DNA from: Trichosphaerium sp. ATCC 40318
Lineage: Eukaryota > Protista > Tubulinea
Assembly (NCBI GenBank): GCA_038496445.1
Contig: JALMLS010000505.1
Coordinates: forward strand, 82,500-146,499
Length of the DNA stretch: 64,000 nucleotides
Direction: 5' to 3'
In this document: piece by piece, positions 13,527-59,665 of the stretch
Layout: every line of letters starts with the position of its first letter
Numbering within the stretch: the stretch's first letter is position 1
Made by a program: the position numbers and the translations under genes
The notes under the pieces: model-generated
Told to the model about the DNA's origin: nothing
What the model saw: only the letters and a program-made list of their open reading frames with translations
Databases searched by the model: none

Positions 13527-14497
13527 TTACAAAATTATACTTAACAGTGCTACAAAAGAAACACAAAACAAAAGATTGATAGAATTCAATTTTTGTGAAG
13601 ATGAACCTGGTGGAGTTACAGGAGATTGTGTTGGAATGGCAGTTGGATCTGCTGTTGGTGCAATTGTTGGCGTTACTGTTGATAGTGATATTGGAAACAC
13701 AGGAGCCAAGTTTGTAGGTGGCATACTTGGAGACACTGTTGTTGGCGTTAGTGTTGTAGGAGCTAACGTGGTAGGGCTTAGATTTGTGGGAGTTTGTGTT
13801 GTTGGTATCATTGGAGGTTGAGTGGTTGGAGGTAGCGTGGTTGGAGGTAAAGTTGTAGGAGGTAAAGTGGTTGGAGGTAGCGTGGTTGGAGCTAACGTTG
13901 TAGGAGGTAGAGTGGTTGGAGGGAGCGTGGTTGGAGGTAGAGTGGTTGGAGCTAACGTTGTAGGAGGTAAAGTGGTTGGAGGTAGCGTGGTTGGTGCTAA
14001 TGTTGTATCTATGTTATATTTCACTACAAATAAACCTGGAGGATGGACTGTTGGTGGTATGTCGAAACTATCAAAAAGGTAAACGCCGGCGTCAAAATTT
14101 GGTAATTGCGCACCCGAATGTTGTTGCATTGAAGAAAGGATTTATGGGAGCATTGGTGAAATTAGAAGAAACCAAAGAGATACCTAAGTTAAAGCGTTAG
14201 TTTAGTGATACCTGTGTTGCCATGACACAAAACAGAGAAGGTAATAATAAAATCAAACTAAAAATACTTCACATATTTATTCTAAAACAGTTTAATGTGT
14301 ATACCTTCAACTATTGATGCCTCCATAACACATCTAACAATAACCGGCAAGCTTGCACTTTGCGCAATACTGGCAACGTGTATGCAACAAGAGCGAGGGC
14401 CAACTTGAGCACTGTACTCTATTGATGCATCGGAAACAATAAAATCAGGGTTGTTTGGTTCCGAAAGAATAGTTTCGTTAGTACTTACACCACGCAT
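13527..14497 (-). CDS. Secreted or surface mucin-like Thr/Pro-rich glycoprotein with hydrophobic C-terminus (GPI-signal-like)
   Basis: Spliced model MRG-STVLKLALALVAYT-CVMEASIVEG-ISLVSSNFTNAPINPFFNATTFG-FDIPP..., then (PTTL[P/A])n, ending SSSQKLNSINLLFCVSFVALLSIIL*. Confidence 0.7.
13815..14005 (-). repeat. 15-bp coding minisatellite encoding PTTL(P/A), about 12 units
   Basis: Repeated gtggttggaggtagc / gttgtaggaggtaaa units. Confidence 0.9.
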
Positions 14498-24558: not shown

Positions 24559-25523
24559 ATGGAACCACACGCTAATGGGATAATTGATGGTGATCACATT
24601 CCAATCGAGATATGGGTTACGGTCCTTAATTTTGTACCTGACAAGTACCTACTACGTGTCGAGCTTGTGTGTACTTTATTTTTGTGTATTTTGAGAGATT
24701 ATTTTGGCTGTAAACCGCCTACTGTTGTTAAAAGAATCAACAGCAAGAAACAGTTGAAAAAACTTCATAAACGAAAGAGTTTTTTTCATTTAAACATATG
24801 CCAAGTTGAGATTAATTACGAAATGAAGGCAAAACACTTTAAGAAATATCTGATTGGAGTGTTTTCTATTCGTTGCATTTATAAATGTGTGAATGAGAAC
24901 TTCGTCAAAGCATTGGCTGGAGTTCATACAATTAACCTTTCTGGTACTAGTGTGACAGATGAAGGTGTCAAAGCACTGGCTGGCGTTCATACTATTGATC
25001 TTTCAAGTGCAAGATATGTTACAGATGAAGGTATCAAAGCATTATCAGGTGTTCATACTATTAATCTGTTTTGTACCAAAGTAAAAGATAGAGGTGTCAT
25101 AGCATTGGCCGGAGTTCATACAATTAATCTTTGTTATACTGCTGTTACAGATACAGGTGTCAAAGTATTAGGTGGAGTTCATACAATTAATCTTTTGGCT
25201 ACTAAAGTTACAGATGAAGGGTCAAAGCATTATCAGGTGTTCATACAATTAATCTCTGTAAAACTGGCGTGACAGACGAAGGTATCATAGCATTGGCTGG
25301 AGTTCATTCAATTAATTTGTCCCAAACAGCAGTGACAAATAGAGGTGTCAGAGCATTATCAGGTGTTCATACAATTATTCTTTCTGGTACTAGTGTGACA
25401 CGTGACGGTATTGAAGCATTGGCTGGAGTACGTAAAGTTGACTTTTCTTATACTCCCTTTTATTATTATGATGGTTTCATTAAGTTAACAAATATTACTC
25501 ATGAATTTCTTTACGAACAATGA
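24559..25523 (+). pseudogene. Intronless F-box + 21/22-aa leucine-rich-repeat gene with a 1-nt frameshift
   Basis: F-box DHIPIEIWVTVLNFVPDKYLLRVELVCTLF and ~9 repeats of VHTINLSGTSVTDEGVKALAG. At 25220, gatgaagg-gtcaaagca lacks the T of the repeat consensus gatgaaggtgtcaaagca, splitting ORFs 24559-25272 and 25269-25523. Confidence 0.8.
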
Positions 25524-47479: not shown

Positions 47480-47830
47480 GATTTTTAAAAACAATCTCTG
47501 ACTTGTACTGTTCACTTAACGCGGAGCAATTTTGTTTTGGTAGTTTTATCTGCACACATACATGTATTTTCACAGACTTATTGTGCAAAAACTCAGGTAA
47601 AAAATCGATTTTTCAAGCCAGATATTATGACTTCTTTGTGGTTTTTAGAGTCTAAAAACAAGGAAGTATTTCAACTGTTTCAATCTTGTGTCAGTTTGAA
47701 AATACAAAATACGCGTATTGACATGTAGATCTGTTGTGTAAGAAATCAGAACTGAACTCGACAGTGTTTGCCATAATGTTACAATTCTTATTTTTTTCTG
47801 TATTTTCCACCGCGAAAACTTGTACTGTTA
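47480..47830. repeat. Diverged copy of the repeat family that forms the foldback element at 55.7-56.3 kb
   Basis: aaaatacgcgtattgacatgtagatctgttgtgtaagaaatcagaactgaactc...gccataatgttacaattcttatttttttctg aligns by eye with 55982-56080; tgtgcaaaaactcagg...aagccagatattatgactt aligns with ~55878-55930. Confidence 0.6.
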
Positions 47831-48092
47831 CATGTGCACATACATATTGGATTTGTGTAAAGAACCAGGGTCGAAGCTGGATTGATGACTTCTCTTTTGA
47901 GCCATAAACAAAGAACTACAATCTCGCGTTCATATCAGCAATTAAAAGACTAAACCGATGTTTTAGTGTATCTTCAGTGCGCCAAAACAAGTTATTGGCT
48001 ATGAATTTTCAACAAGTACACTATATGAGGAAAACTAAACTATGGTTGTTTATTGATAATGATATTGCTTGCTTACAACAAACACATTAGAA

Positions 48093-51000
48093 TTACTTTG
48101 TACTTTCAAGAAGAGCTATTTTTGCCAGTAGAATAGTATTCCTCTCCTTTAGGTTAGTGTTGTCTTGCTTTAGATCTTGGACACTTTCCTTGAGGTTAAC
48201 ATTGTCTTGCTTTAGATCCTGGACACTTTCTTTGAGGTTAGCATTGGCTTGCTTTAGATCCTGGACACTTTCGGTGAGGTTAACATTGGCTTGCTTTAGA
48301 TCTTGGACACTTTCCTTGAGGTTGATATTGTCTAGCTTCAGGGTGTTGTTGCTTCCTGTGAGGTCTTTGACACTTTCTGTTAAGTTGGCTTTGTCTTGTT
48401 TTAGGTTATTGATGCTTTCAGTCAATTCAGTAATGTGCTGTTCTCTATTTGCGTTGGCTTTCTGTGAATTCTGATGAAGTTCAGCCAGGCTCTTCTTTAA
48501 TTTCTCTACCTCACTGTTTGATTGTTGTAATTCCAGTTCGGGATTGACATAATTATAACTTGGTTGTTCATCAGTTGAATCATCATGGGCCGCCCACAGT
48601 TTTCTAGTGCAAAGCCTAAGTTTAAAAGAAAGAGACTATGAAATTATACCGGTTAGAAATAAAAGTGTCATCATCAGAATCAGATAGTTCATCATCAGAT
48701 AGCTCACCAGCGGAACCATCAGTATCTGCTTCTGAAGCTTTGTCCTCAATTTGTTCGTTATCGCCTTTCTCTTTCTTTGTCATTTTATCGTCTTTCTTGG
48801 CTTTTTTAGTTTTACGTCTTTTTTTTGTACATTGTTTCTTTGTAACTTTGATGATGTACCGAGCAACAGCTTGAGTATCTAAAACAGTGTTTGAGTACTT
48901 AATCACAATTTTCTAATGTAATGTTGAGTGTACCTTGTGCCACTACCAGCTCATCGTATACTGCATCTTCAAGTTTATCTGGTTTCAGAAGTTTACCCTT
49001 TCGATCTACCAATGCATAGTGACTTTGGTAGCCTGGTTTTATTGGCCTTCCATGCAAACTTTCATTGATGTTTTTGATACCATCCTTACATACGAGGGGA
49101 TCATGCTTTTTATCAAGTAAGTAAAGAATATTCACATCAATATTATTGTTTGCTTACTGGATAAACGTTGCCAGGAGTAACAAGACTTAAAACAAGTGTT
49201 TTTGCGGTTCTTCCTTTCAAATCATATGAAGCAGCATACTTTATGCTTCTCTATCGGCGACAATGAATATTGACCACCTGCAAAAATTGGCTAGTAACGC
49301 ACAGTGAAGTATATCCCTTGACCATAGTAACCAGCATCTAAAGAACTCACAGTTCCAAAACCAGCCTTTACAATACTGTAAGCTGCATCGTTGTTCGTAC
49401 CATGGACCATTAATATCACTGGTAACTAAATAAAACGTTTGTTAATGCAAGAGTACCAAGTAGCATTACCTTATCTTTCTTGGTAGTACGACAATCATTA
49501 AAGGCAGTGAGGGTGTTGTACTTTTGGTACACAGTCTCTTTGTGTTCCTTGTAGATACTTTTTTTCCACTCTTGTTTTTTAAACAACTCGGGCAGTTCTC
49601 TAATATGTGCATGTTAGAATCAAGAAACATCTACGTGGGATAAACGTACTGGTGTCTGTGTTTTAGTATTTCATTGACCCGACCAAAGTTATCTGTCAAG
49701 ATGTCATTGTAAACAAGACTCGCTTCAACGATATTGTATTTGTCATAGCCGTGTAGCTTTGACATCTCCTGTTTGAGAATGTTGAATTCTCTGACAGCCA
49801 CTTTGTCGTTTTTGTCAAGAAGGTTCAGTATTTTGTAGTGTGTCGCCTTTGCAACAATACCTCTTTTTATAATATAAGAATTAATTAAAAAGGCATTGCC
49901 CATACGTGTTGGAGCTATCCCAATTATTTGCAAAATACAATCGCGGATTCAAACTCCATGCGTTTTCGCCTTGTAATCCTTTTGAAACTGTTTTAGTATT
50001 TTATCACATACACACCTTACCTCCAGTACGCTCTTCTTGTAAGTATTCAACATGTTTGTTATTAACCCACGCATCATTGGGCATATCATACAGAATACCT
50101 TGCATTAATTTCCCATCTTGTTTCCAGAAGTCCTGTAGAAAAAAAGTTGTTTGTAGTGTTGAGTTACCGGTGGATATCGTACTGGAGACAATACAACTTT
50201 GGGATCGCATGTAGAACAAATTAAATAACAAATACCTTTATCCATTGCCAGTTTGAAATAATACCGTGTTGGCTGAAGGTTGTGTGATTAGTTTAAGGTA
50301 TTGGCATTCAATAAAGTGTACCAAACGGCAAAGCCATTCTTCAAACTGTTTTCTCTCTTCTACGTTGACATTTTGTGAATAGTGCTTTATACAGTATCTC
50401 CACAGTGCATGGCATTGTTTACCACCTGGACAGTATTTTAAGAAAGTTATGAATTTTTCAACAGCTGAAGGTGTATTTGATATCACTTTTCTAATTAAAA
50501 TGAACATAAAGTCTTGCCATCTTCTTTTGTCCGGAACTACTGCTAACAGTGTTAGCTATTATTTTACCAAATTGTTTTGTAATGTGCCCAATACCTGAAT
50601 CCTTGCTGGTTCCACCATCAATATCAATATTATTTGTGTTAGGTTTGATTAATTTCAACATTTGCATTGAGATATAGTTAAAATCTCAAAACGATAGTGA
50701 GTAAACACAGGTTTTATCTCTTTTGTTATATTACCTGTAGCATAAATCAAAGCTGTATTTCCATATTCATCAACAGCATCAATATTGGCTTTGGCATTGA
50801 TTAACATTGATACAACTTTATTGTGTCCATTTTTTGCTTTAAATAATAATGTGAGTTTGCACTTGTTACTGTATTTCATCATGATTACCTGCATAAATCA
50901 AAGCTGTACTTCCATAGTTATCAACAGCATCAATATTGGCGTTGGCATTGATTAACATTGATACAAATTCATTGTGTCCATTTTTTGCTTTAAATAATAA

Positions 51001-53629
51001 TGTGAGTATGCATACGTTACTGTATTTCATCATAGTTACCTGCATAAATCAAAACTGTATTTCCATATTTATCAACAGCATCAATATTGGTGTTGGCATT
51101 GATTAACATTGATACAATTGCATTGTGTCTATTTTTTGCTTTAAATAATAATGTGAGTATGCATACGTTACTGTATCTCATCATGATTACCTGCATAAAT
51201 CAAAGCTGTCCTTCTATTTTCATCAACAGCCTTAATATTGGTGTTGGCATTGATTAATGTTGATACAACTTCATTGTGTCCATTTTGTGCTTTAAATAAT
51301 AATGTGAGTATGCACATGTATTTGTATCTCATCACGATTACCTGCATAAATCAAAGCTGTATTTCCATATTTATCAACAGCATCAATATTGGCGTTGGCA
51401 TTGATTAACATTGATACAATTTTATTGTGTCCTTCTTGTGCTTTAAATAATAATGTGAGTATGCACTTGTTACTGTATCTCATCATGATTACCTGCATAA
51501 ATCAAAGCTGTCTTTCTATTTTCATTAGCAGCCTCAATATTGGTGTTGGCATTGATTAACATTGATACAACTTTATTGTGTCCATTTTGTGCTTTAAATA
51601 ATAATGTGAGTATGCACTTGTTACTGTATCTCATCATGATTACCTGCATAAATCAAAGCTGTCCTTCCATATTCATCAACAGCATCAATATTGGCGTTGG
51701 CATTGATTAACATTGATACAACTGCATTGTGTCCTTCCTGCGCTTTAAATAATAATGTGAGTATGCATACGTTACTGTATCTCATCATGATTACCTGCAT
51801 AAATCAAAGCTGTACTTCCATAGTTATCAACAGTATCAATATTGGCGTTGGCATTGATTAACATTGATACAACTTTATTGTGTCCATTTTGTGCTTTAAA
51901 TAATAATGTGAGTATGCACTTGTTACTGTATCTCATCACGATTACCTGCATAAATCAAAGCTGTACTTCCATAGTTATCAACAGTATCAATATTGGCGTT
52001 GGCATTGATTAACATTGATACAACTTTATTGTGTCCATTTTGTGCTTTAAATAATAATGTGAGTATGCACTTGTTACTGTATTTCATCACGATTACCTGC
52101 ATAAATCAAAGCTGTCCTTTTATAGTAATCAACAGCCTCAATATTGGCGTTGGCATTGATTAACATTGATACAAATTCATTGTGTCCATTTTTTGCTTTA
52201 AATAATAATGTGAGTATGCACATGTTATTGTATCTCATCATAGTTACCTGCATAAATTAAAATTGTATTTTTATCTTCATCAATATTGGCTTTGGCATTG
52301 ATTAACATTGATACAACTTCATTATGTCCTTTTTGTGCTTTAAATAATAATGTGAGTTTGCACTTGTTACTGTATTTCATCACGATTACCTGCATAAATC
52401 AAAGCTGTACTTCCATCTTCATCAACAGCATCAATATTGGCGTTGGCATTGATTAACATTGATACAATTTTATTGTGTCCATTTTTTGCTTTAAATAATA
52501 ATGTGAGTATGCACATGTTATCGTATCTCATCACGATTACCTGCATAAATCAAAGCTGTCTTTCTATTTTCATCAACAGCATCAATATTGGCGTTGGCAT
52601 TGATTAACATTGATACAATTTTATTGTATCCATTTTTTGCTTTAAATAATGTGAGTATGCACTTGTTATTGTATCTCATCACGATTACCTGCATAAATCA
52701 AAGCTGTCCTTCCATATTCACCAACAGCATCAATATTGGCGTTGGCATTGATTAACATTGATACAATTTTATTGTGTCCTTTTTTTGCTTTAAATAATAA
52801 TGTGAGTATGCACATGTTATTGTATCTCAACTATTACCTGCATAAATCAAAGCTGTACTTCCATATTCACCAACAGCATCAATATTGGCGTTGGCATTGA
52901 TTAACATTGATACAATTTTATTGTGTCCATTTTTTGCTTTAAATAATAATGTGAGTATGCACATGTTATCGTATCTCATCACGATTACCTGCATAAATCA
53001 AAGCTGTATTACCATATTTGTCAACAGCATCAATATTGGCGTTGGCATTGATTAACATTGATACAATCTCATTGTGCCCATAACGTGCTATAAATAATAG
53101 TGTGAGTATGCACTTGTTACTGTATCTCATCATTATTACCTGCATAAATCAAAGCTGTACTTCCATATTTATCAACAGCATCAATATTGGCGTTGGCATT
53201 GATTAACATTGATACAACTTTATTGTGTCCATTTTTTGCTTTAAATAATAATGTGAGTATGCACATGTTATCGTATCTCATCACGATTACCTGCATAAAT
53301 CAAAGCTGTATTTCCATAGTTACCAACAGCATCAATATTGGCGTTGGCATTGATTAACATTGATACAATTTTATTATCTCCTTTTTGTGCTTTAAATAAT
53401 GTGAGTATGCACTTGTTACCGTATTTCATCATGATTACCTGCATAAATCAAAGCTGTATTTCCATAGTTATCAACAGCATCAATATTGGTGTTGGCATTG
53501 ATTAACATTGATACAACTTTATTGTCTCTATTTTTTGCTTTAAATAATAATGTGAGTATGCACATGTTATTGTATCTCATCATAATTACCTGCATAAATC
53601 AAAGTTACTTCACTTTGTGATTCTGTCAT
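48093..53629 (-). CDS. Ankyrin-array (19 repeats) + PARP-type ADP-ribosyltransferase domain + Lys/acidic linker + C-terminal coiled coil
   Basis: Continuous in-frame splicing traced by eye from ATG 53629 (MTESQSEVTLIYA) through 19 ankyrin exons and linker exons to LPVILMVHGTNNDAAYSIVKAGFGTVSSLDAGYYGQGIYFT/RSIKYAASY..LVLSLVTPGNVYP..GYQSHY..VYDELVVAQ/DTQAVARYII, then (KESVQDLKQDNVNL)n and the stop at 48093. Confidence 0.85.
48140..48420 (-). repeat. 42-bp coding tandem repeat (14-aa, double-heptad coiled coil)
   Basis: About 4 near-identical units tgctttagatc[ct]tggacacttt..gaggtt plus degenerate flanking units, encoding (K/T)ESVQDLKQ(D/A)NxNL. Confidence 0.9.
50735..53604 (-). repeat. Tandem array of ~151-bp units (99-nt ankyrin exon + 52-nt intron): 19 complete units plus 1 partial
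   Basis: acctgcataaatcaaagc recurs at ~50887, 51038, 51189, 51340, 51491, 51642, 51793, 51944, 52095, 52246, 52388, 52539, 52687, 52836, 52987, 53138, 53289, 53437 and 53588. Minus-strand intron consensus gtaatcatgatgagatacagtaacaagtgcatactcacattattatttaaag. Confidence 0.95.
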
Positions 53630-54969
53630 GACGTGTTGTCACTCTTGGGGTTACCACGAAGCAGTATTAAGTCGTTACTTGACACGAGATATTTTTCGGT
53701 GAAGTGTTATTGTAATGTGCGTTTCGGTTCTGGTTCTGTGTTTTTACTATTTGCGGTTCACAGAGTGTTTTTGAAGCCCTAGGAACTGGAATGTACCTCC
53801 GGTCATGTAATAAGGCGATATGGGGACATAGTGAAGATAAACCGGTAACCCGGCAAAACCGTCGGTAGTTTATTTTTTGGGTAGTTTTTTGCCGTATTCA
53901 CAGTTCCACCTGTAGCGCTATCACTCTTTAGAGATTTACCCATTCCATTTACCAGTCCGTGTATATTTACGAAAGACGCGCCACGTACATAAATGAGTTA
54001 AGGAGACACAAACAACTACAAAACTGCATAAGAGATTCAGATACCTTTCGAAAAAAAAGCAGATAATCCAGATTTATTTTTTCTAACCGCGAAAATATCT
54101 GTAACTGAGCCGCTAACCACGTGTTTCATGAAAAAATGTAAAAAACACAATACTATCTTGAATACATGATTCCGATCATTTTAGAGTCCAGAATAGCTAC
54201 TGTACTATATTTTCAACTTTTTTATAGTAGCGGGCTTCTCATCACCTTCTTGCGTTCATTATAGGCGTCAGTAACCATCAAAGCGGTAGTTAATAGACTA
54301 TAAATATACATACCATTGAATAGGTTGATAAAAGCTCTAATACAGCGTAGTAACACTCTTTAACACTAAAAATCGCGAAAGAAGTGCTCATACAGCAAAG
54401 TGCGTATCGAGGGAACCAAATAAAATTGTGGTTATCACATCACATCATTAAACTACCAACACACCACAACAACCAAGCTAAATGTCAAATAAACATTAAC
54501 CAACAACAAAACAAAGAAACGTGTCACTCAAAAGAAGAAACCTGCAAAACCAAAGCCAACGGAGAAACAACTTCGAATGAGAGGAGGATAAAGCCTTGAC
54601 TAAACACCATCTACCTCACTCCGATAGAGACTTGGGAATACAAAAAAGTGTGTAAGAATACAGAAAGAATGATCCTTTATCACAACTTTGCCATTCTTCT
54701 TTAAATCCATCCTGTAAAGTCTCGCACCTGACCAAATATTTTAATAAGATTCTTCTAACGGCAGAGAGATCAGTTGTAGTGTGGGAAGACTAGTAATGGA
54801 GACGACAGGATTTGTAAGCAGCTATTTTTGGTTTCAAATTTAATTTCAAACGAACAACAATGAACAAAGTACACTGGCTATCAAGCATCGCCGGTGCGCT
54901 AGTAGTAGGTGGTGTAGTTGGAGGCATAGTAGTTAGTCTCACCACTTGTTTTTTTACCCTGTGATATAA

Positions 54970-55312
54970 CTAAAGCAGCTTAGAAAGGCCCTTAATAGTC
55001 ACTGCTGTATTGTTTTCACTATTTAAATGTGCTTTAATTAATATTGATATAATCGCACTATTTAGTTTTTGCTGAATAGTAGGTAACCTGTTAGAATTAC
55101 GTTGTGATGTACCTGCACAAAATAAAGCTGTGGTTCCATCTTTATCAACAACATCAATATTTGCATTTGCTTCAATTAGTGTAGACACAGTCACATTTTC
55201 CATGTTTTGCTACAAAATAGTGTAAGCCATAGTGTTACCTGCACAAATTAAAGCTGTATTTCCATCTTGATCAACAGCCTCAACATTGGCATTTGCATCG
55301 AGTAACGTTGAC
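54970..55312 (-). pseudogene. Degenerate one-repeat-per-exon ankyrin exons (relic of a related array)
   Basis: LLDANANVEAVDQDGNTALICA and TVSTLIEANANIDVVDKDGTTALFCA, with the same GCAG|GT phase-1 donors. The second exon is 2 nt short and the third has an early stop. Confidence 0.7.
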
Positions 55313-55739
55313 AACGTGGCGAAAAAACTGATGCGCAAAACAGAAAGTGTTCACTTGTTCATAGTCTTTGACGTTTTCACAATTCCATGTAACGCTTCAA
55401 AGAATTATCCCCTCCATCACTAGCCTCTGTATTTAGAAGTATATGAAGTACATATATAAGAAAAAGGAGAACCAAAAAGAATGAAAGAAGGTACTAGCTG
55501 CTTTCTCAATTGCCGCTATCTGACATTGGTTGGCTAGCCAAAACTGAAATTAGGTGAATAACGAGAATAGTGTATTAGGAATAGACAGGTTTTTTGATAT
55601 AAGCGTGCTCGTTAATTCACGCCATCTACTTATTTTGTATTATCTGGTTGCACCAAAAGTAAGTACTTGTACTGAAAGTAATTTTTTCCTGTGTTAATCC
55701 AGTCGTTCACAATTCTTTGGGCCAAGTATACAAGTGGCG

Positions 55740-56337
55740 AGGAACTAACATGTGTTAAAAAGCCAGAAATTGTATATTGTGTAGATTTTTTGATTTCAAA
55801 AAACACATAAAATGAAAACCTGTGTGGAGAAATTATTTTATTGTCGGATTCTATGCACTCATACAGGTGGCATTAGTGTGCAAAGAATCAGCATCAAAAT
55901 CGGTCCGGTAAGCCAGAAATTTTGACTTTTTTGTCGATTTTTTGCTTCAAAAACGAAGACTTTTTCACCTTCAAAAAAATTGAAAATACACGTATTGACA
56001 TGTTGGTGTACTGTGTAAAAATTCAGAGCTGAACTTGTCCGTGGTTGCCATAAATGTTACCTTTCTTATTTTTTTCTGGAATTTTTTTTGAAGGTGAAAA
56101 AGTCTTCGTTTTTGAAGCAAAAAATCGACAAAAAAGTCAAAATTTCTGGCTTACCGGACCGATTTTGATGCTGATTCTTTGCACACTAATGCCACCTGTA
56201 TGAGTGCATAGAATCCGACAATAAAAATAATTCCTCCGTGCAGATTTTCATAAACACACGTGCGTTTTTTGAGCACTAAAAAAAACTACTGTTGCTTGTG
56301 GAGTAAGTTGGAGTCGCCTTGGTACATGTAAGATCCT
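55740..56337. mobile_element. Foldback / MITE-like non-autonomous element with ~150-bp near-perfect inverted arms
   Basis: Arm ~55831-55981 (aattattttattgtcggattctatgcactcatacaggtggc...ttcaccttcaaaaaaatt) is the reverse complement of ~56080-56232 around a ~98-bp spacer. Weaker symmetry extends to ggaactaacatgt / acatgtaagatcc. Confidence 0.75.
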
Positions 56338-59038: not shown

Positions 59039-59665
59039 TTAGGTGGCATTGCTTTTGGATAAGTTGACAATATCTTTCTTCAGGTTTTTGATGCTTTCTT
59101 TAATGATGGTATTGCTTTCTGTTAATTTGACATTGTCGTCCTTCAAGTCATTGACACATTCTGTCAACTTGATATTGTCTTGCTGTAGGTTGTTGCCACT
59201 TTCTGTTAGGCTGGCATTGTCTCGCTTCAGGTCGGCATTGTTTTCTGCTACTTTTGCTTTCTGTAATTGTATGTCGAGATATACATCATTGCTAGTTGAT
59301 TGCTGGTCATCAGTTGAATCCACATGGGCATCCCATAGTTTTCTAGTACAACAGCGTAAGTTTAAATAAGCAAAAGATGTGACTTCTTACCGGTTGCTAG
59401 TAAACTTGTCATTAGAGTCGGAGAGGTCATCTGTCTTCGGGTTTATTTGTATTTTTTGTTTTTTTCGTTTGGGAATCTTTTGGTACAACTTTAATGATGC
59501 AACGAGCAACAGCTTGATTATCTAAAAGGCGAGTTATAATACAATTTTTGTAATTTCTAGTACCTTGAGCAACAACAAGCTCATCGTACACCGCATGAGA
59601 TACTCTATTTTCTTTGAGAGGTCTACCTAAGCGATCTACCAATATGACTTTGGTAGCCTGTTGTC
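59039..59665 (-). pseudogene. 5'-truncated paralog of the PARP/coiled-coil gene at 48093-53629
   Basis: GYQSH(frameshift)LVDRLGRPLKENRVSHAVYDELVVAQ, NQAVARCIIKV, TRKLWDAHVDSTDDQQ and degenerate 14-aa heptads. Intron positions match the intact copy; no HGT/GIYF part upstream. Confidence 0.8.

Follow-up and report, generated by a model that had tools for sequence, protein, structure and literature searches.

The stretch of Trichosphaerium sp. ATCC 40318 DNA analysed here (64,000 nt of contig JALMLS010000505.1, referred to as the window) carries a gene in which 19 very similar ankyrin exons, each with its own short intron, are arranged in tandem ahead of the exons for a predicted PARP-type ADP-ribosyltransferase domain and a coiled coil. 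We consider it probable, at roughly 0.72, that this is a recently expanded, converting tandem exon array under selection, forming the variable arm of an ankyrin-PARP protein.

The array, which is coded on the minus strand, is recognized by Tandem Repeats Finder as a single strong repeat at 50740-53611 with a period of 151, 19.1 copies, 89% matches and a score of 4442. Its exons, E1 to E19 in the direction of transcription, run from 53537 down to 50735, and every one of them is in phase 1-1. Exon length is 99 nt in 17 of the 19 units, and the introns are almost as regular, with 52 nt in 16 of 19 and small deletions that bring the other three to 49, 50 and 49 nt. All 19 introns start with GTAAT or GTAAC and nearly all finish with TTTAAAG, such that the acceptor is AAG in 18 and TAG in one. 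The individual features of the array are as follows.

50735-53589, minus strand: ankyrin exon array of 19 units, 151 bp each, made up of a 52-nt intron and a 99-nt ankyrin exon.
53088-53139, minus strand: the sole intron of the array with a TAG acceptor, its excision visible in cDNA (sequencing run X2).
52248-52337, minus strand: E9, 90 nt, with a 9-nt in-frame deletion in the beta-hairpin part of the repeat.
51795-52044, minus strand: E11 (52044-51946), intron 11 and E12 (51893-51795), the two exons being 99 nt each.
50735-50836, minus strand: E19, 102 nt, the last full ankyrin exon, with 3 extra nt just before the donor.

This frame-neutral cassette structure had already been noted in a preliminary description of the sequence, and its coordinates, its length variants, the identity of E11 and E12 (99 of 99 nt) and the AAG acceptors all check out. 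The same description held that the introns are about as conserved as the exons. This is correct as an average, the mean pairwise identity across units being 91.8% for introns and 90.4% for exons, but the average conceals an intron with a free 5' half and a constrained 3' half, as discussed below. At the amino acid level, the repeats are on average 79.4% identical (range 64-100%). Each exon starts at position 11 of the Ank profile. Against Pfam Ank (PF00023), the translation of E12 alone scores 21.0 bits, marginally under the cut-off of 21.1, and that of E4 27.9 bits, while the single-exon scores against Ank_4 (PF13637) are 23.5 and 28.5 bits, both over the cut-off of 22.7. The array thus encodes 19 in-register repeats, one per exon, that belong to the ankyrin family. 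No meaningful inverted repeats and no reversed or antisense units are present within it. Plus-strand open reading frames (ORFs) of 54-56 aa recur along the array, and were rejected as by-products of the repeat; a search of both strands of 47500-56000 against Rfam gave no match.

Evidence that the introns are real comes from RNA. Contigs of four sequencing runs, which are the products of a de Bruijn assembler and not reads, were compared with positions 48000-53700 (5,701 letters). In run X2, a small cDNA data set whose contigs are 99+% identical to the window, the first exon of the gene (exon 0) is spliced to E1 (joint 53537/53590) with exactly 52 nt removed and GT..AG ends on the minus strand. 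In the same run, 112 letters without a mismatch connect E3 with E4 (53140-53201 to 53038-53087), and 8-letter stubs of the adjoining exon are found at the E2/E3 and E4/E5 boundaries. As the junctions in the X2 cDNA match the predicted introns, the array introns with AAG acceptors are really removed, and at the predicted junctions, just as the preliminary description had assumed. One X2 joint of 200 nt seems to lead from E1 directly to E3. We reject it as a case of exon skipping: it rests on 20 letters common to E1 and E2, and because the final 32 nt of these two exons are identical it is equally a normal E2/E3 junction. The 5' ends of the cDNA place the start of transcription just upstream of exon 0, as one X2 contig aligns up to 53657 and continues in 21 loose letters, which we take to be the SMART template-switch adapter, and one contig of run X1 stops at 53647 and continues in Illumina adapter letters.

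The AAG acceptors had been suggested to favour skipping, AAG being found in place of YAG. This does not hold up when the rest of the gene is considered. The acceptors of its 12 non-array introns are TAG in six cases, AAG in three, CAG in two and GAG in one. Since AAG occurs in these three, and one of them (49106-49157) is seen in use in X1, AAG is a normal minority acceptor in this gene and not a skipping signal. The 18 AAG sites of the array are copies of one inherited, ancestral site, and not 18 independent choices.

The gene model that surrounds the array was built from open frames, GT/AG sites and RNA joints. It extends from 53629 to 48094 on the minus strand and comprises 32 exons and 31 introns, every intron being 42-55 nt in length, with a product of 1323 aa that has no internal stop. 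The protein consists of about 20 ankyrin repeats, a Cys-rich linker, a PARP-type ADP-ribosyltransferase domain, a K/D/E-rich segment and a coiled coil, in that order. In the list below, P0001 is a homologous protein, and L001 is the transcript that encodes it, from JGI sample 3300016894.

53647-53657, minus strand: approximate transcription start, from cDNA 5' ends.
53590-53629, minus strand: exon 0, 40 nt, with the ATG at 53629, coding for an N-terminal half repeat that ends in ..TLIYA, and finishing in phase 1.
50595-50684, minus strand: capping repeat exon, 90 nt, a degenerate C-terminal repeat in the same phase as the array, its frame agreeing with that of L001.
50021-50542, minus strand: Cys-rich linker, three exons, aligning to P0001.
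48934-49978, minus strand: predicted PARP-type ADP-ribosyltransferase domain, six exons, with motifs H (..HGT), Y (..GIYFT) and E (..DELVV).
48094-48878, minus strand: K/D/E-rich exon and coiled-coil exon, with 42-nt (14-aa) repeats in the coiled coil and the stop codon at 48096-48094.

Run X1 matches unique parts of the gene over 150, 106 and 204 letters with 0-1 mismatches, and supports the introns at 50273-50321 and 50133-50182 (linker), 49106-49157 (AAG acceptor) and 48604-48649. The intron before the capping exon (50685-50734, 50 nt) has a predicted GAG acceptor that lacks RNA support, and two short introns (42 and 43 nt, each ending in AAG) lie in an ambiguous stretch where they are favoured by the alignment with P0001. 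Three further observations were made along the gene. At the start of the linker, tandem TAG/CAG acceptors 3 nt apart (50540-50543) are both in frame, an arrangement of the NAGNAG type. At position 50240, the plus-strand A of the window is a T in X1 and X4. In the protein this amounts to a D/E difference; the change also abolishes a TAA (50240-50238), which was considered as a premature stop and rejected, as it sits in an unused frame. Finally, an X1 contig joins 49650 to 49105 with 0 mismatches, omitting three PARP exons (346 nt, a frameshift) together with the H and Y motifs; it stems from a deleted copy or else from an isoform that is non-productive.

The nature of the C-terminal part is best seen from its relatives, of which there are few. 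When the translation of a 70-aa exon was compared with 1.84 billion cluster representatives, only three matches were returned, two of which are real relatives (P0001 and P0002, both from transcript contigs of one JGI sample), while the third, a bacterial PAS-domain protein, was rejected as spurious. A wider word-based search found seven relatives only, one of which has both ANK and PARP. The family is thus nearly without relatives in public protein sets. The spliced C-terminal 646 aa align to residues 2-588 of P0001 at 50% identity across the whole PARP domain, an alignment that validates the splice model. Taken alone, exon 49303-49425 scores 19 bits against Pfam PARP (PF00644; E=0.0011), under the cut-off of 26.7, which P0001 and P0002 both exceed with 30.9 and 36.5 bits. 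A phmmer search of PDB sequences with P0001 gave no match, so that a family profile was required; its nearest matches are PARP12, PARP10, ZAP, PARP4 and PARP15, and no tankyrase chain is found among its 52 matches. Invariant in the family alignment are G-T, the tyrosine of GIYFT and the E of ELV, whereas the H of the triad is replaced by Q in three members. The E of DELVV aligns where PARP12 has the third residue of its triad. On this basis, the window gene would be a divergent PARP-type ADP-ribosyltransferase of the H-Y-E class, its predicted NAD-binding triad being complete.

Outside these regions, few domains can be named. Neither the linker exons nor the capping exon have a credible Pfam family, no SAM domain is matched by any linker exon or by P0001, and for the gene and P0001 the only matches are to ankyrin, PARP and coiled coil, with no Roc-COR, NB-ARC or NACHT. 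The combination of ankyrin repeats with PARP is a genuine property of the family, because L001, a homologous mRNA, carries at least seven ankyrin repeats upstream of its PARP part; by this homology the order ankyrin, linker, PARP, coiled coil is real. The ankyrin repeats of L001 are far more divergent among themselves than those of the array, and for this reason the homogeneity of the array appears to be a recent, lineage-specific state. In L001, a run of N letters stands between the ankyrin part and the linker/PARP part, so that the gene caller made two proteins of this mRNA. P0001 and other public models of the family that contain PARP only may thus lack their true N-terminus.

How the array reached this state can be approached from the differences among its units. 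The most recent event seems to be marked by E11 and E12, which together with their upstream introns differ at 1 site in 151, whereas their downstream introns differ at four sites, as is expected from a recent duplication of one unit. The units are otherwise mosaic. All four gametes are present in 421 of 780 pairs of informative sites, which fits ongoing unequal recombination or gene conversion. Distances among exons are poorly reflected in distances among introns (r=0.25 for the upstream intron and -0.07 for the downstream intron), and the intron 5', exon 5' and exon 3' segments are mutually unlinked (Mantel r from -0.13 to 0.08), the two halves of a single exon among them (r=-0.03). Introns I12 and I16 are identical, as are I13 and I14, and these adjoin exons with 11-13 differences. 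Units 10 and 18 have in common a GTAACT-type intron and the first half of the exon; in the 3' half of the exon they differ, which places at least one breakpoint inside the exon, within its invariant core (37 nt). Tracts that are invariant and able to mediate exchange are found not only in the 3' half of the intron (about 25 nt), but also in the exon core (about 37 nt) and at the exon end plus donor (about 20 nt). As the segments are unlinked and a breakpoint falls within the exon, it is probably the whole unit that recombines or converts, with no visible special role for the introns. The mosaicism fits the recombination that had been proposed earlier, while the part of that proposal that made the conserved introns the substrate is not supported.

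Variability within the unit is graded. Nucleotide diversity (pi) is highest at eight hypervariable codons (0.255), followed by intron columns 3-27 (0.154), the framework codons (0.046) and intron columns 28-50 (0.018). By halves, the intron has a diversity of about 0.14-0.15 on the 5' side and 0.017-0.018 on the 3' side, and nowhere is the unit under stronger constraint than in columns 28-50, which reach from a branch-like ACTCAC to the acceptor. This is the pattern that constitutive splicing predicts. If the 5' part of the intron is used as a neutral proxy, the hypervariable codons exceed it (Mann-Whitney p=0.039) and the framework codons lie below it (p=0.0075). With all codons included, the ratio of nonsynonymous to synonymous proportions (pN/pS, Nei-Gojobori) among the repeats is 2.15; it rises to 3.19 when only the eight hypervariable codons are counted and drops to 1.09 for the framework. 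Computed among repeats of one gene that recombine, such a ratio does not test selection formally. The hypervariable codons correspond to canonical ankyrin positions 2, 3, 4, 5, 13, 14, 18 and 19, of which the first six belong to the concave binding surface and the last two to helix 2. We regard this as evidence, not proof, of diversifying selection on the predicted binding surface.

From the array, its splicing, the architecture of the gene, the graded variability and the mosaicism, we infer the following history. A module of 151 bp, consisting of a short intron and a 99-nt ankyrin exon, would have been tandemly duplicated over and over, likely by unequal homologous recombination or replication slippage, with gene conversion between the units continuing afterwards. 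The phase-1 intron, which lies at a fixed site of the repeat (canonical positions 11/12), would be older than the expansion and copied with the exon, since two decayed ankyrin exons elsewhere in the window (55021-55314, see below) end at the same point of the repeat (..CAG/GT). All introns are apparently removed constitutively, to yield a solenoid of about 20 repeats in which purifying selection may hold the framework and the splice signals, while surface positions 2-5, 13 and 14 and helix-2 positions 18 and 19 are diversified. The solenoid would be the recognition arm of the protein, its output a divergent H-Y-E PARP-type ADP-ribosyltransferase, and the C-terminal coiled coil would presumably serve oligomerization.

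Many of the array contigs of run X1 are only 90-99% like the window, and some of them join units in an order that is absent from it. One contig connects the end of E4 with the start of E19, skipping 2152 nt; this joint has canonical ends and a depth of 13.6, and its shorter side measures 51 letters. Others run backward, from an E13-like end to the start of E4 and from an E19-like body to the start of E9, and one exon type is attached to three different upstream exon ends. As linear splicing of one locus cannot reorder exons, the simplest reading of these joints is that they are transcripts of paralogous or allelic arrays; exon skipping or back-splicing is a less likely source.

The same contigs bear on several alternative explanations of the array. 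One is that its symmetric exons are skipped in a combinatorial or regulated manner, allowing a single gene to make solenoids of varied length and composition, in effect much as Dscam does. Any skip would keep both frame and fold, given that phase (1-1) and structural register are common to all exons; the joint of E4 to E19 has the form of such a skip, and the joint 49105/49650 means that skipping may occur elsewhere in the gene. However, this evidence consists of assembled contigs, the backward joints are beyond linear splicing, a simpler source of all these joints being paralogs or another allele, the sole skip in X2 is ambiguous between E1 and E2, the AAG acceptors are used and are shared with other introns of the gene, and no part of the unit is better conserved than the intron half with the branch site and acceptor. 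We find regulated skipping distinctly improbable. Strict exon shuffling, with the conserved introns as preferred recombination substrates that make alleles and paralogs differ heritably in the number and order of their repeats, is unlikely. It would account for the nearly invariant 25-nt tract of the intron, for identical introns that flank unlike exons, for a duplicate (E11/E12) that spans one intron plus one exon, and for the arrays with other unit orders suggested by X1. It is at odds with the halves of single exons, which are as unlinked as exon and intron, and with units 10 and 18, which put breakpoints in the exon core too, and the conservation of the intron 3' half is already accounted for by the branch site and the acceptor. 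More broadly, the array might be the diversity generator of a protist ankyrin-PARP sensor family, in which repeat number and order change frequently from one cell, clone or allele to another, or combinatorial skipping takes place, to provide a repertoire of binding solenoids for an ADP-ribosylating effector. The differently ordered X1 junctions could be a first glimpse of this process, and if it were true, the exon shuffling that has been proposed for LRR and TPR genes of brown algae would have an ankyrin equivalent here; we hold it to be quite unlikely.

Two explanations would remove the array as a biological entity or change the origin of its introns. With units that are 90% alike, an assembler might over-expand an array, or mis-join reads from several paralogous ankyrin arrays, and the other unit neighbourhoods in X1 are in keeping with this. 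Such an artefact is very unlikely, as E1, E2, E3/E4, E4, E5 and their junctions are reproduced without a mismatch by X2 contigs, marker changes distinguish individual units while an open frame is kept consistently through all 19, and the window has no N letters. The introns, being near-identical, might also be copies of a mobile, intron-generating element of the introner type. Introners are recognized by near-identical introns at unrelated loci, whereas a search of the 64-kb window with the intron consensus (up to 3 mismatches) found 15 matches, all 15 within the array (shuffled sequences expect 0), so that a look for this intron at other loci, as the preliminary description had recommended, turned up none in the window. 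Moreover, the position in the repeat and the phase are always the same, and the intron was duplicated along with its exon in E11/E12 and their upstream introns. We regard introners as extremely improbable here. A scan of JGI metagenome contigs for the spliced exon-exon junction and for the invariant exon core found neither.

That we favour a recently expanded and converting array under selection does not mean that all observations point the same way, and several weigh against it. The junctions confirmed in the run that matches the window, X2, are the 5'-proximal ones only. If the unit orders of X1 were from this locus, then splicing or the array itself would not be fixed. Recurrent mutation may inflate the four-gamete and mosaic signal: two of the intron sites that vary are in a CpG context, and mutation may have struck the hypervariable codons more than once. 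Copy number and unit order are known from one assembly, and the higher diversity of the hypervariable codons relative to the neutral proxy has only modest significance (p=0.039).

Comparison with known systems helps to define what is particular to this gene. A fair parallel, drawn already in the preliminary description, is with the ROCO-LRR and NB-ARC-TPR genes of Ectocarpus, where one leucine-rich repeat (LRR) is encoded per 72-nt, frame-neutral exon and positive selection acts on the binding face (Zambounis et al. 2012, PMC3341825). They have been proposed as candidate receptors that diversify via exon duplication and shuffling (PMC3341825; for brown-algal ROCOs, PMC11378527). As in Ectocarpus, each repeat of the window array occupies one frame-neutral exon of constant length, and the variable residues fall on the ligand-binding face, with hints of positive selection. 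The repeat is, however, ankyrin and not LRR or tetratricopeptide repeat (TPR), the output is PARP-type with neither Roc-COR nor NB-ARC, the introns are about 52 nt and near-identical, and the units are far more homogeneous. The array introns also differ in that they contain no orphan or antisense repeat exons.

In evolutionary regime, the array looks much like the repeats of fungal NLRs. These have ANK, TPR or WD repeats with high internal conservation, repeat-number polymorphism and selected positions on the concave surface, as in the Podospora nwd family (Dyrka et al. 2014, PMC4986451), and concerted evolution with repeat reshuffling has been proposed as their engine of diversification (PMC4986451). 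By the definition used in that work (at least 85% identity over at least 100 aa), the window repeats, at 79%, do not belong to this class. What they share with it are very similar tandem repeats within one gene and a hypervariable concave ankyrin surface. The window gene has no NOD (NACHT or NB-ARC) domain, and its repeats are one per exon, a division that we do not expect in fungal NLR repeats.

Tankyrases, which combine ankyrin clusters, SAM and PARP, similarly place ankyrin repeats N-terminal to an H-Y-E PARP catalytic domain. The window gene is by its predicted features not a tankyrase: no SAM was found in it, its catalytic profile is nearest to PARP12/PARP10/ZAP, its repeats are homogeneous and hypervariable rather than arranged in five conserved ankyrin repeat cluster (ARC) units, and it ends in a coiled coil. 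In the animal ankyrin genes ANK1-3, many of the 24 repeats are likewise each encoded on a 99-bp exon for 33 residues, but there the exons and introns are old and divergent, the introns are long, and no homogenized unit such as the one seen here exists. A literature search for ankyrin genes in which every exon codes for a single repeat gave nothing useful. Designed ankyrin repeat protein (DARPin) libraries randomize positions 2, 3, 5, 13, 14 and 33, and five of our eight hypervariable codons (2, 3, 5, 13 and 14) coincide with these; in the natural gene, 4, 18 and 19 vary as well, and 33 hardly does. Exon duplication is already considered one route of repeat expansion (PMC1553488).

Elsewhere in the window there are other traces of the family. 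Upstream of the transcription start of the gene, two divergent ankyrin-like exons on the minus strand (55021-55314) have the same donor at the same repeat position; one of them is 97 nt, the intron between them is only 31 nt, and they look like decayed relics of another array. At 59048-59642, also on the minus strand, lies the 3' end of a truncated paralog, made up of the last PARP exon (..AVYDELVVAQ), a K-rich stretch and a coiled coil that has 42-nt repeats. Where it corresponds to the main gene, this fragment shows 36-50% identity, and no upstream PARP or ankyrin exons were found for it. Together, the decayed exons and the truncated paralog suggest that the ankyrin-PARP family has turned over locally within the window.

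Two other repeats were also observed. On the plus strand, 24904-25429 holds about eight copies of a 63-nt (21-aa) repeat, 71% alike, that code for LRR-like units (..ALAGVHTINLS.T.VTDEG..) in a single ORF of 237 aa, and are, unlike the ankyrin array, intronless. A minus-strand ORF of 200 aa (13527-14129) contains at 13811-13994 a 15-nt repeat coding for a mucin-like, Pro/Thr-rich run of TTLPP, and has a hydrophobic C-terminus.

The array itself can be explained by ordinary mechanisms. Its wider significance is that fast-evolving recognition proteins, among them the fungal NLRs, the ROCO and NB-ARC proteins of brown algae and the VLRs of lampreys, time and again combine homogenized repeat arrays with a hypervariable binding surface. 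The Trichosphaerium gene would follow the same logic with ankyrin repeats, one per symmetric exon, coupled to a PARP-type effector and a coiled coil. Should the genome contain many genes of this kind, they would make up a candidate sensor-effector family specific to the lineage, and would offer a convenient natural system in which to measure the expansion, conversion and diversification of tandem exon arrays.

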